Sequence record: NC_041917.1
Direction: 5' to 3' (one strand)
DNA length: 64,000 bases
Shown in pieces: positions 49,907 through 51,420 of this stretch. Below the pieces are notes generated by a model, which searched no databases, was not told where the DNA came from, and saw only the letters and a program-made list of their open reading frames with translations. Positions within the stretch are counted from its first letter, which is position 1. Every line of letters begins with the position of its first letter. The translations under genes were made by a program, and so were the position numbers.

Positions 49907-49934
49907 AAAAAGGAGCCATTAGGCTCCTTTTTTT
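49907..49934. terminator. Bidirectional terminator overlapping the endo VII stop
   Basis: aaaaaggagcc-atta-ggctccttttt, the same stem as 4774-4800. Confidence 0.88.
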
Positions 49935-50401
49935 ATTTGTGTCATATCTAAATCGCCAGATTTAATCAACTTTCGGGCTTGATTAGCTCTTTTAGCTGTG
50001 TTAGACTCTGGTACTACATTAAATGATTCTAAAATAGAACATTGTTGAGCAGATGGCAATGATTTGAACTTGCGAACATCAACCGTGAGTGCTGTGTGGT
50101 GTATATGCATGTTTGAATAGTCTTGTTCATAATAATCTGCTAGATTTCTTAAAATTGTTGGTAAATCGGTATCTGTTAGGTGTTTAATGTATCTATCGTA
50201 AGCATTTTGTACTTTACCTTCAAATGAGTTAACAGTTCTATCTAGTACTGCTCTACATTCTTGTTCACCTTTATGATTATGGTCTAGTACTGGATCTTTT
50301 ACCTTCTCTTTTATAATAGGATCTAAACCTTTTTGACTTTTAAGTAAATCTGCCCTATACTTGGCAGCCTCTTTTGAATTTTTTAATCTTTGTCGTTTCA
50401 T
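49919..50401 (-). CDS. gp49: Recombination endonuclease VII-like Holliday junction resolvase (T4 gp49)
   Basis: LDHNH...RAVL...NSFEG catalytic D/H/N/E pattern and LRNLADYYEQDY...HH; the Zn cysteines are absent. Confidence 0.75.
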   Translation of the reverse strand: MKRQRLKNSKEAAKYRADLLKSQKGLDPIIKEKVKDPVLDHNHKGEQECRAVLDRTVNSFEGKVQNAYDRYIKHLTDTDLPTILRNLADYYEQDYSNMHIHHTALTVDVRKFKSLPSAQQCSILESFNVVPESNTAKRANQARKLIKSGDLDMTQIKKGA

Positions 50402-50429
50402 ATATACCCCTAAAGTCTTTATATAATTG

Positions 50430-50435
50430 TATTTA
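50430..50435 (-). promoter_or_regulatory. Possible late promoter TAAATA for the endo VII gene
   Basis: Motif 29 bp upstream of the start. Confidence 0.5.
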
Positions 50436-50443
50436 ACGAAATA

Positions 50444-50472
50444 TGGAACGAATTAAAAATATTTGGTATAAT
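50444..50472 (+). promoter_or_regulatory. Early/middle-type promoter TGGAAC-N14-TGGTATAAT facing an ORF-free region
   Basis: Perfect copy of the motif. Confidence 0.85.
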
Positions 50473-50477
50473 AAGAT

Positions 50478-50990
50478 AGTAAAACCCTGTTTGGCAATAC
50501 ATGGATGTGTGTTGACAGTTAGTAAAACCCTGATCTAGTCGAAAAGTAGACAGCAGATGAGAAGTTCAAACAGTTCGTTGTGCAAAAGAAACCCGTTAGA
50601 AGTACGTGCAGTCAATCAAATGCGACATAAGACACCGAGATCACGGCAATGCGGCACATTAAAGAAGTACACTAGGCAAATAGTACTTCCTCGATAGACA
50701 TTTAAGGATCGCACCTTACGAAGTAGCTAAGGGAGTTTTTCTGGATAAGAAAATTGCGATTGATTTATATACAATATAGATCCGTCAAAAATTCAGAAGA
50801 ATAAGTATTAAGATTGATTGTATAGTCTTAATATTAGTGTGGTAAGCCCACGACCGTTGCACATGACCGTAATAGAGAGAAACAGAGCAACCCGCTTTCG
50901 TTCTAGAGATAGAAATTTACGATACAATTAAATCCGACGACTATCATCGTCAGAACAATATTCAGTACCTTTATTGGTACTTTTTTATTG
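50478..50990 (+). ncRNA. Candidate large structured non-coding RNA, about 500 nt, family unassigned
   Basis: Own promoter; no ORF of 60 aa or more; most 60-mers 38-43% GC; at least 8 hairpins with GNRA-type loops and G-U pairs in + sense; ends at a hairpin plus T6. Confidence 0.6.
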
Positions 50991-51180
50991 TCTTCATTCC
51001 CCTGTGGGGGGATGATAAAGTCCTCTACAAATCTCGTCAGTATAACAGTATTAAACGTAGTAAGTATTGAATTGAGTTTGCTTCAGTACAAACGAAGTGA
51101 AGTACAGAACAAACGAAAATTCTTTGACATTCGAAGAATGGCAAATTAAACAGTATGAAATATTCTTAAATTCAAGGTAC

Positions 51181-51206
51181 AAAAAAACCAGCAACTAGTG
51201 CTGGTT
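51181..51206 (-). terminator. Intrinsic terminator of the tail chaperone operon
   Basis: aaccagca-actag-tgctggtt with an A7 tract on + (U7 on -). Confidence 0.85.
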
Positions 51207-51420
51207 ATGATTTTTTGTTTTCACGTTTAATCTTTTTGTTATATTGCTTCACCATCAAATCTTTGTCATTCACTGGCATATTCAAAAGCATTTCATATGA
51301 AGTATTAGGTATATGAACTGCAACTTCCATTAAAGAATTTTTAATTTCTTCGCAGTTGAAACGCAATTCAGATATTTCCTTCATTACTTCTTCTGGTTCT
51401 GAGATGAGAAGCCTTGAACG
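51205..51420 (-). CDS. Downstream tail/baseplate assembly ORF: a -1 frameshift extension of the upstream gene, or a 59 aa protein from ATG 51384
   Basis: Frame is open from 51462; T_TTT_TTC at 51426-51420; TAATG overlap at 51386-51382. Confidence 0.6.
   Translation of the reverse strand, partial: RSRLLISEPEEVMKEISELRFNCEEIKNSLMEVAVHIPNTSYEMLLNMPVNDKDLMVKQYNKKIKRENKKS

Follow-up and report, generated by a model that had tools for sequence, protein, structure and literature searches.

Introduction

Large ornate RNAs of the ROOL and GOLLD type comprise several hundred nucleotides (nt) in an elaborate fold with pseudoknots, are borne by phages or prophage-like elements, have their own promoter, and have no known function; multimeric cage formation has been reported for both (bioRxiv 10.1101/2024.12.08.627333). 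Here we analyse an RNA that is like them in size class, elaborate pseudoknotted fold, carriers, own promoter and lack of a known function, and that lies on the + strand at ~50479-51157 of a 64,000-nt stretch of sequence record NC_041917.1 (the whole stretch being referred to as the window, and positions being those of the window unless a phage genome, locus or contig is named). The new RNA belongs to the same class by length (>400 nt), covarying complex fold, non-coding character, and phage or prophage carriers, the class being a descriptive one that does not imply homology. It differs from ROOL and GOLLD in that it has no Rfam 15 sequence or structure match to either, in that its hosts are Enterobacterales rather than Lactobacillales or rumen or lake bacteria, in that it has three paralogues per genome, and in that it has no transfer RNA (tRNA) genes nearby. 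No description of it was found in the literature on jumbo-phage non-coding RNAs, Rak2, 121Q, GAP32, ROOL/GOLLD, phage CBB and phage fENko-Kae01, in a 2026 review of jumbo phages, or in structured-RNA surveys, the supplement of a 2023 virus-wide survey lying outside the search.

Other described systems bear comparison. RNA II of ColE1/pMB1 is likewise a promoter-driven RNA, of ~550 nt, with a G-rich element; in RNA II the fold matters, and the G-rich element aids hybrid formation. The new RNA differs in that it has no sequence similarity to RNA II, in that it has pseudoknots and an internal terminator, in that an RNA I-type antisense promoter was not found, and in that it has no match among PLSDB plasmids. 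The likeness to the T4 origins oriF and oriG lies in a T4-related phage as carrier, an early/middle-type promoter, and several dispersed copies per genome; T4 origins, however, are ~100 bp long, comprise a promoter and an unwinding element, and are not known to have a conserved RNA fold, whereas the new RNA has 500-700 nt of covarying structure. HK022 put and EAR resemble it as folded RNAs located directly 3′ of a promoter and 5′ of a terminator, but such antitermination RNAs are several-fold smaller, of the order of 70-120 nt, there is no Rfam match, and the window copy has no downstream gene to antiterminate into. Bacterial RNase P RNA (type A) shares two short look-alike stretches with it, and both have long-range pseudoknots. 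Within the clade, the sole precedent backed by RNA sequencing is provided by the long non-coding RNAs ncRNA001-004 of PA5oct, a jumbo phage related to the Rak2 group, which are promoter-proximal, several-hundred-nt transcripts free of open reading frames (ORFs) (PMC7318152).

Results

A conserved RNA with a two-pseudoknot core

The RNA lies in 50402-51204 (803 nt); in agreement with an earlier sequence-only reading of the window, no other stretch of 200 nt or more in the window is free of ORFs of 60 amino acids (aa) or longer. These 803 nt are 100% identical by blastn to positions 174402-175204 of the 357-kb genome of Serratia phage BF, an Eneladusvirus (KY630187), where no feature is annotated. 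By blastn the RNA stretch occurs in 62 phage records, with 91-100% identity for Eneladusvirus homologues, 74-78% for Mimasvirus CBB, GAP32, Kaldavass and XbC2, 71-72% for 7t3, Munch and fENko-Kae01, and ~69% for Asteriusvirus of the 121Q/PBECO4 type. Alignment of the phage homologues shows invariant blocks that alternate with helices in which changes are compensatory.

Helices were derived by scanning all column pairs for stacked covarying pairs, and were then tested on tool-made alignments: alignment A2 for the 5′ domain (31 sequences), alignment A3 for the 3′ core (50 distinct sequences), and a separate 32-sequence alignment that takes in the RNA tail. As a control, 3′ partners were slid by 1-3 columns. 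Across the structure tests, 87-93% of cells were paired, vs. 33-48% in slid controls. For the 3′ core (50804-50951; A3, n = 50), standard pairs filled 93.4% of cells, vs. 35-44% slid, 37 of 49 pairs had changed on both sides, and the covariation score was 0.584, vs. at most 0.11 slid; none of 500 shuffles matched any of the observed 3′ core measures, the 32-sequence alignment gave the same picture, and covariance model R1 scored 152 bits on the 3′ core of the window copy. For the 5′ domain (A2), 86.8% of cells were paired, vs. 33-44% slid, with a covariation score of 0.453, vs. at most 0.087 slid. The elements defined in this way are as follows:

50479..50803, + strand: 5′ domain, by covariation in A2
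50495-501/50508-14, 50561-63/50574-76, 50579-83/50654-58 and 50593-96/50643-46, + strand: helices of the 5′ domain
50664-70/50683-89 and 50703-07/50714-18, + strand: further helices of the 5′ domain
50530-32/50554-56 plus 50538-40/50549-51, + strand: helix of the 5′ domain, capped by a conserved GAAAAGUA loop
50726-35, + strand: invariant GCUAAGGGAG of the 5′ domain
50735-41/50796-802, + strand: tentative closing helix, enclosing an optional insert with the motif UACAAUAUAGAUCCGUC (50770-86)
50804..50928, + strand: 3′ double-pseudoknot core, by covariation in A3
50804-15/50824-35, + strand: helix H5, with 12 of 12 pairs covarying
50817-23/50922-28, + strand: pseudoknot helix H6, with 7 of 7 pairs covarying and 99.7% paired
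50838-42/50848-52, + strand: helix H7, supported by covariation
50856-60/50887-91, + strand: pseudoknot helix H8 (GUUGC/GCAAC), 100% paired, crossing the nested H9 and H10
50868-72/50917-21, + strand: helix H9, 99.2% paired
50875-79/50895-99, + strand: helix H10, 100% paired
50901-05/50910-14, + strand: helix H11, supported by covariation
within 50804..50928, + strand: invariant segments ACGACCGUU, AGAAACAG and AACCCGCUU, by conservation

In H6, the six-nucleotide loop of H5 together with U50823, just 3′ of the loop, pairs with 50922-28, a strand 100 nt downstream. Neither H6 nor H8 as a pseudoknot figured in the sequence-only reading, which had proposed that 50856-50863 pairs either locally with GCAAC or with a distant strand: the local pairing with GCAAC 50887-91 is borne out (100% paired, three covarying pairs), and the distant one is not, UGUGC 50579-83 pairing instead with GCACA 50654-58. 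Covariation upholds four of the stems proposed in that reading (50664-50689, 50804-50835 with 12 of 12 pairs, 50839-50851, and 50901-50914). It does not support a fifth, at 50714-50732, where CCUUA 50714-18 covaries with the upstream UAAGG 50703-07. A sixth, at 50737-50753, competes with the closing helix 50735-41/50796-802, and both look possible: strand UUUUUCUG (50736-43) has two conserved complements, one local (50749-53) and one distal (~50794-801). The closing helix around the optional insert, 53% paired in A2 and with 6 of 6 pairs covarying in another alignment, is tentative. The scan revealed no further long-range helices among 5′ domain, 3′ core and tail, invariant segments being invisible to such a scan.

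Although the paralogues are only ~65-70% identical, they agree without exception at about 60 nucleotides that lie outside helices. The motif UACAAUAUAGAUCCGUC is located either in the 5′ insert or at the H11 tip, depending on the member, a change of position that is also seen for peripheral tertiary-contact elements of large folded RNAs. Covariation thus shows a multi-helix 5′ domain and a compact 3′ core with two pseudoknots.

The pairing also identifies the strand. G-U pairs account for 9.6-10% of paired cells and A-C for 1.2-1.8%, a five-fold or greater excess, and pairing read on the opposite strand would lose ~8 points; the + strand is therefore the RNA strand. Each of the BF ORFs of 25-53 aa in this stretch is intact in only 1-13 of 32 representatives (<88% identity), and RNA segment lengths vary out of frame, by numbers that are not multiples of three. 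An AUG after the G run opens a mini-ORF in some members and is broken by 1-3 nt indels; invariant UAAGGGAGU resembles a Shine-Dalgarno sequence and has no start codon after it. Records PQ464595 (Kaldavass), PQ464590 (Hallingskeid), MK773491 (7t3), OR228459 (ENKO_278) and several of SD phages place short hypothetical coding sequences (CDSs), 30-70 aa long, on top of the RNA; these are probably spurious, since none is conserved, and the GenBank entries in which they overlie the RNA call for correction.

Searches for known families were negative. With Rfam 15 (4227 models, including RNase P, transfer-messenger RNA (tmRNA), group I/II introns, ROOL, GOLLD, OLE, 6S and riboswitches), the window gave no match at the gathering threshold; at E ≤ 10, 50300-51300 gave only terminator-like small-RNA and microRNA noise outside the core, and nothing was found at the RNA in nine bacterial loci or inside the RNA of eleven homologue loci. 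ARAGORN found no tRNA or tmRNA gene in the whole window, and tRNA genes were not detected in the bacterial island loci. The sequence-only reading, which had found no resemblance to tRNA, tmRNA, RNase P or group I intron, is confirmed on this point. A group I intron was considered and rejected: the pseudoknot order is H8-H10-H8′-H10′ with no hairpin between the 3′ strands, unlike P3-P7 with P8, no gene is interrupted, since those on either side are encoded by the opposite strand, and the Rfam model Intron_gpI has no match.

The sequence-only reading had offered two alternatives: a large structured RNA of the phage, unannotated and with a promoter and terminator of its own, or the RNA primer of a transcription-activated origin. 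The checks that it named include an Rfam search and covariation across related jumbo-phage intergenic regions. Both favour the first alternative: neither the window copy nor its homologues match a family, and sequence and structure are conserved, with covariation. Homologues occur in 62 phage records and in numerous contigs from metagenomes and genomes, covariation on the + strand is very strong, and neither a conserved ORF nor an Rfam match was found. On this evidence we conclude that this is almost certainly a real structured + strand RNA family that was previously undescribed.

The conserved unit extends past an internal terminator

The elements that would start and stop transcription, and the conserved elements between and beyond them, are as follows:

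50444..50472, + strand: promoter TGGAACGAATTAAAAATATTTGGTATAAT, with a −35-like TGGAAC (50444-49), a 17-nt spacer and an extended −10 element TGGTATAAT (50464-72)
50936..50951, + strand: hairpin GACGA-CUAUCA-UCGUC, followed by AG; sequence highly conserved, pairing 63-65% in the alignment register
50964..50987, + strand: internal intrinsic terminator AGUACC-UUUAUU-GGUACU plus U6, by terminator scan, with flanks ACAAUA/UAUUGU
50995-51002/51007-14, + strand: G-rich hairpin CAUUCCCC-UGUG-GGGGGAUG, 92.7% paired
51028-42, + strand: conserved linker ending in CAAAUCUCGUCAGUA, by sequence conservation
51066..51157, + strand: 3′ module, with UGAAUUGAG, a stem with conserved loop AAACGAAGUGA, AAAAUUC, and the hairpin GACAUUC-GAA-GAAUGGC
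51186..51206, both strands: bidirectional terminator hairpin AACCAGCA-ACUAG-UGCUGGUU, by terminator scan, kept in copy-1 orthologues

The claim of a perfect promoter copy holds at the level of the motif: TGRRAC-N17-TATAAT has six matches in the window, where 0.08 are expected, all on the + strand (1709, 22702, 45796, 50444, 60716 and 63822), and TGGAAC-N17-TATAAT at 50444-50472 is among them. The six copies mostly have TG directly 5′ of the −10 element. The motif represents a phage promoter class that can be used for mapping early/middle transcription units of BF. The position of the promoter places the predicted transcript start near 50479. A TGnTATAAT or TATACT element is kept upstream of homologues in jumbo phages and bacterial islands alike, with island promoters of the form TGAAAC-N17-TATACT or TATAAT with upstream TG; given this retention of promoter type in islands, host sigma-70 RNA polymerase is most likely the reader of the promoter. 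The "divergent RpoD-like promoter" of phage CBB is of the same motif class as TGGAAC-N17-TGGTATAAT (PMC5259590).

The sequence-only reading had ended the RNA at 50990, with a terminator at 50964-50986. A stem-loop followed by a U run, that is, an intrinsic terminator, is indeed present at 50964-50987 by scan and by covariation (5 of 6 stem pairs covary in the 32-sequence alignment, with 100% pairing where the stem is present). It does not end the unit: the downstream module is common to jumbo phages and islands, and the unit, ~50479-51157 on the + strand in BF, therefore is longer than 50478-50990 and contains the terminator internally. The terminator is present in members of copy-1 and copy-3 type and is missing in about a third of the family; members of copy-2 type and L019/L023 type, L033 and L122 do not have it. 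In copy-2 type and several other clades, GACGACUAUCAUCGUCAG is joined directly to CAUUCCCC-UGCG-GGGGGAUGAAAUUGCCUCAACAAAUCUCGUCAGUA, with no terminator hairpin between. As a separate observation, members of a third paralogue class (L023, L084 and L068; e.g., Yersinia phage fHe-Yen9-04) have TATAAT and then a hairpin plus U run (GGACAGCAC...GUGUUGUCCUUUUUU) directly 5′ of the RNA, so that a terminator-like element precedes the RNA in this class and interrupts it in other classes.

Upstream of the internal terminator, the stem proposed in the sequence-only reading at 50936-50951 is plausible, the pairing of 63-65% giving it weak support. Its GACGA has two conserved complements, UCGUC 50947-51 and 51034-38. 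CGUCAG occurs twice, on the 3′ side of this hairpin and at 51035-40, and the two copies vary together, both reading CGUCAA in the 7t3/121Q group and CGAAG in a distant subfamily; GACGA could therefore pair with either. Downstream of the internal terminator, the G-rich hairpin and linker (50995-51042) are kept in all paralogues, islands and the distant subfamily, and variation in the hairpin is mostly from C-G to U-G, which is compatible with the + strand only. The 3′ module, conserved in jumbo phages and islands alike, has UGAAUUGAG, a stem with AACGAAGUGA as its loop, AAAAUUC and, last, a hairpin; its proposed pairs are 74.6% paired, vs. 31-50% slid (MAFFT alignment), and its secondary structure is tentative. 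The bidirectional terminator ends the minus-strand baseplate operon and would halt read-through of the RNA.

Diverged paralogues in jumbo phages

A motif scan of viral contigs gave more than one match in BF, in CBB and in several 350-370-kb contigs, and profile searches showed that the multiple matches are full-length paralogues, a feature that the sequence-only reading of one copy had not included. BF has three copies, all on the + strand, each in an unannotated gap of 0.64-0.8 kb:

~174.4 kb of BF, + strand: copy 1, the window copy and the sole copy in the window
~258.8 kb of BF, + strand: paralogue upstream of an ADP-ribosylglycohydrolase gene
~335.3 kb of BF, + strand: paralogue within the early-gene block

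Two uncultivated contigs of 349-366 kb also have three copies each, and paralogues are roughly 65-70% identical. The copy-3 class regularly precedes an ADP-ribosylglycohydrolase gene (BF_0349, locus L143, 4683-5612; also the L077, L040, L186 and L180 loci). The 3′ modules of BF copy 3 (L138, 6788-6879) and copy 1 (51066-51157) are nearly identical, the remainder being only ~70% alike, which suggests gene conversion between the two copies.

Carriers also include a distant T4-like clade and the fHe-Yen9 phages. A further 62 loci came from a metagenomic scan; among them is the distant subfamily, with a complete 3′ core, a 5′ domain that is recognisably related but diverged, and an unchanged baseplate-portal synteny. 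Metagenome contigs L164 (1692-2161) and L180 (2942-3381) have two adjacent partial profile matches each, which suggests that these copies are rearranged or internally duplicated. With filters off, model R1 gave no credible match in the syntenic baseplate/endonuclease VII (endoVII) regions of RaK2, a Vibrio jumbo phage, PA5oct and Atu_ph07, the best score being 16.5 bits (rough nominal E 0.012), inside a coding region; in RaK2 only 364 nt separate the endoVII and baseplate genes. R1 likewise had no match at the PA5oct ncRNA001, ncRNA002 and ncRNA004 loci (ncRNA003 lying outside the comparison).

Homologues in bacterial chromosomal islands

A pattern scan of one genome per species found full-length homologues in nine bacterial contigs: Citrobacter amalonaticus, Serratia fonticola, Serratia sp., Silvania, Buttiauxella, Enterobacter chinensis, an Enterobacteriaceae isolate, and two metagenome-assembled genomes. 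At most of these loci an integrase adjoins the RNA (of the large serine recombinase type at five loci and of the tyrosine type at two); five also have a CI-like repressor, and one has a Cro-like gene. In Serratia fonticola the order is integrase, two ParB-like genes, RNA, host rof, tilS.

In E. coli the RNA is present in 2 of 5426 complete genomes. Strain LR-29-1 (NZ_AP027515) has between ffs and ybaA an island of ~10.4 kb with no phage structural genes, and the RNA occupies an unannotated 1.4-kb gap in it. This island (L219, 15791-26400) has a tyrosine integrase interrupted by IS3, the RNA, a minus-strand DuOB/DUF488/DUF4326 trio, and a small recombinase, and by this gene content may be a defence-type or satellite-type element.

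Pfam and PHROGs searches of the proteins near island RNAs identified integrases, a CI/Cro-like pair, ParB-like proteins, an invertase, LprI, DuOB and DUF488. The island proteins had no tblastn match in the jumbo-phage loci compared, and a conserved 286-aa island protein had no match in 50,697 phage records. In a maximum-likelihood tree, the island RNAs fall within clades of jumbo-phage paralogues, those of the Citrobacter group as sister to the copy-2 clade (support 97/85) and those of Buttiauxella, Silvania, Enterobacter and Serratia together with the paralogues of a 349-kb contig. Since the tree is nested and no proteins are shared at the loci compared, the RNA would travel as a self-contained module.

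Flanking genes of the window copy

The genes that flank the window copy, all annotated in KY630187, are as follows:

49919..50401, − strand: endonuclease VII gene BF_0246
51205-51384, − strand: small hypothetical gene BF_0247
from 51384, − strand: baseplate hub gene BF_0248 (ORF to 52289, annotated to ~52259)

The phage homologues found by blastn are invariably syntenic, with endoVII on one side and the baseplate hub on the other. Eneladus-, Mimas- and Asteriusvirus and 7t3-like phages have in common the order endoVII, RNA, small ORF, baseplate hub, portal, which the distant clade (L173) retains in part. The raised G+C content claimed in the sequence-only reading is present and modest: 0.376 for 50478-50990, vs. 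0.344 for the whole window.

Some homologous loci differ in gene content or labelling. In Salmonella phage Munch (L009, 702-1658) and Klebsiella phage fENko-Kae01 (L010, 702-1658), and only in these, a 318-aa + strand ORF lies between endoVII and the RNA, directly 5′ of the RNA promoter; by Pfam it has DUF723, a treble-clef zinc-finger domain (DUF4379) and a weak CapR match, and it looks like a free-standing insertion of the homing-endonuclease type. Pectobacterium phage CBB has an extra structural-protein gene, CBB_247 (L003, 266-1000), between gp46 and endoVII, which other phages do not have there. The baseplate hub homologues of Yersinia phages fHe-Yen9-03 (g246c; L002, 2452-3327) and fHe-Yen9-04 are 85% identical to that of BF and are labelled "Lead, cadmium, zinc and mercury transporting ATPase", evidently a mis-annotation.

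Discussion

According to the reading that we favour, the RNA acts in trans as a folded molecule. Host sigma-70 RNA polymerase would start at the TGGAAC-N17-TGGTATAAT promoter; most transcripts would stop at the internal terminator, yielding a predicted short form of ~505-510 nt; and read-through would add the G-rich hairpin, the CAAAUCUCGUCAG linker and the 3′ module, yielding a predicted long form of ~730 nt that would be ended by the bidirectional terminator. The two isoforms, set by the internal and the bidirectional terminator, are what we infer from the promoter and terminator motifs. The invariant unpaired nucleotides would constitute a binding surface or an active site: the invariant unpaired sequence, the double pseudoknot and the movable peripheral motif argue for recognition or chemistry by the RNA. 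The partner would be something that all carriers have. The carriers are 350-kb lytic myoviruses and ~10-kb integrase-bearing islands, which share Enterobacterales hosts but no protein at the loci examined, making a host partner most likely, or else an RNA that acts alone and would be, for example, self-assembling or catalytic. Three diverged copies per jumbo genome would raise dosage and avoid recombination between repeats. We put action in trans, with a host partner or with itself, at slightly better than an even chance, and the whole account, mechanism included, also a little above even.

A number of points weigh against this account. The transcript ends, abundance and stability of all members are inferred only. 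No catalytic motif was recognised in the RNA, and no candidate RNA partner was recognised by Pfam or PHROGs among proteins near island RNAs; the comparison that found no shared protein spans only ~8-40 kb around island RNAs and the compared jumbo-phage loci, not whole genomes. Copies 2 and 3 have genes of the same strand behind them, with no obvious terminator in between, and could therefore serve as leaders. A terminator within the conserved unit is unexpected if the product is one stable RNA, and the dispersed copies and the G6 run also fit a cis-acting origin. The minimum-free-energy z-scores are −2.9 for the + strand and −2.3 for the minus strand, so that stability alone is unremarkable and the case for the RNA is comparative, not energetic.

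The alternative that survives best, although we consider it unlikely, is that the locus is a cis-acting replication origin, in which the folded promoter transcript would serve as a pre-primer in the style of ColE1 RNA II or T4 oriF/oriG, a persistent RNA-DNA hybrid aided by G6 downstream would prime the leading strand, the three copies would be three origins, and the island copy would let a helper phage's replisome replicate the island. The early/middle-class promoter is in keeping with this, as are the ~550 nt of structured RNA 5′ of a G-rich hairpin and A+T-rich sequence, and the shared orientation of three copies dispersed over the genome (174, 259 and 335 kb). The islands are accommodated too: they are small, have an integrase and no recognisable replication genes in the stretches examined, have the RNA but no proteins in common with the jumbo-phage loci examined, and exchange the RNA with jumbo phages according to the RNA tree. 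Yet T4-type origins need a promoter and an unwinding element and are not known to need a conserved RNA fold; the invariant loops and two pseudoknots favour recognition or catalysis over hybrid formation; an efficient-looking terminator lies 5′ of the presumed hybrid site in most members; there is no turn in GC skew at the locus beyond the effect of gene orientation, the profile being uninformative; and prophage-like islands place the RNA between integrase and repressor.

Slightly less probable is a reading in which the RNA founds a functional class of its own, as a ribozyme or as an RNA that self-assembles or captures a host factor, and is exchanged between jumbo phages and small integrase islands, with the islands as satellites or anti-phage elements that exploit or decoy the phage RNA. 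Such islands might borrow a cis signal of the helper, for origin function or activation, or might titrate a factor that the phage RNA needs. On this reading the RNA would be the first RNA-based link between jumbo phages and chromosomal islands.

A cis-regulatory leader, whose 5′ fold would modify polymerase as put and EAR do or would sense a signal that decides between stop and read-through, is very unlikely. Its appeal lies in an arrangement that runs from promoter through structured RNA and intrinsic terminator to conserved downstream sequence, in the position of copies 2 and 3 5′ of same-strand gene blocks, and in the two strands, GACGA and UUUUUCUG, that each have two conserved alternative partners. 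But those alternative pairings do not overlap the terminator stem, and about a third of members have no internal terminator at all; the window copy has no downstream + strand gene and faces a convergent operon, island RNAs converge on cI or parB-like genes, and known antitermination RNAs, at ~70-120 nt, are far smaller.

That the RNA is a diverged or circularly permuted RNase P RNA, or another RNA that binds the tRNA elbow, is largely refuted and has hardly any probability left. The leads were two stretches that we took to resemble E. coli M1 RNA: CCCACGACCGUUGCA...ACAGAGCAACCCGC (50847-50896), presumably like CCCACGACCAGUGCAACAGAGAGCAAACCGCC, and AGAUGAG...AGAAACCCGUUAG (50555-50599), presumably like AGAUGAAUG...ACAGAACCCGGCUUA, in an order that would suit circular permutation; on test the idea failed. 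No RNase P model matched the window copy or 11 homologues at E ≤ 10. For P4 (CR-I/CR-V), the CR-V-like CCCGU pairs with ACGG 50 nt downstream, the helix CCGU 50593-96/ACGG 50643-46 covaries (U-A changes to C-G or A-U, with a CCG-UUCG-CGG hairpin in L077), and the supposed partner strand shows no covariation, UUAG/CUAA variation not being compensatory. The stretch that looks like J11/12-J12/13 consists of the pseudoknot helices H8 and H10, both 100% paired, where RNase P has an unpaired junction at the place of the GUUGC/GCAAC look-alike. Three paralogues, and islands without detected tRNA genes, also fit such an RNA poorly.

A protein-coding stretch, with small ORFs or a decayed gene, can be dismissed: BF does have ORFs of 25-53 aa here, and Kaldavass, Hallingskeid, 7t3, fENko-Kae01 and others have short annotated CDSs across the corresponding stretch, but none of the BF ORFs is conserved, indels are not in threes, and substitutions are compensatory across helices, not concentrated at third codon positions.

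The comparative support for this structured RNA is unusually clean: two proven pseudoknots and ~60 invariant unpaired nucleotides across more than 70 distinct sequences. Large intricate RNAs of unknown job are rare, and each so far has opened new biology or structural principles. The presence of three copies in cultivable phages of E. coli K-12, Serratia, Cronobacter and Salmonella makes experiments feasible now. The occurrence of one RNA in 350-kb lytic phages and in ~10-kb islands that share no protein at the loci compared points to a self-contained module that moves between mobile elements. The RNA would also offer a handle on jumbo-phage replication or host take-over in the Rak2-like group.

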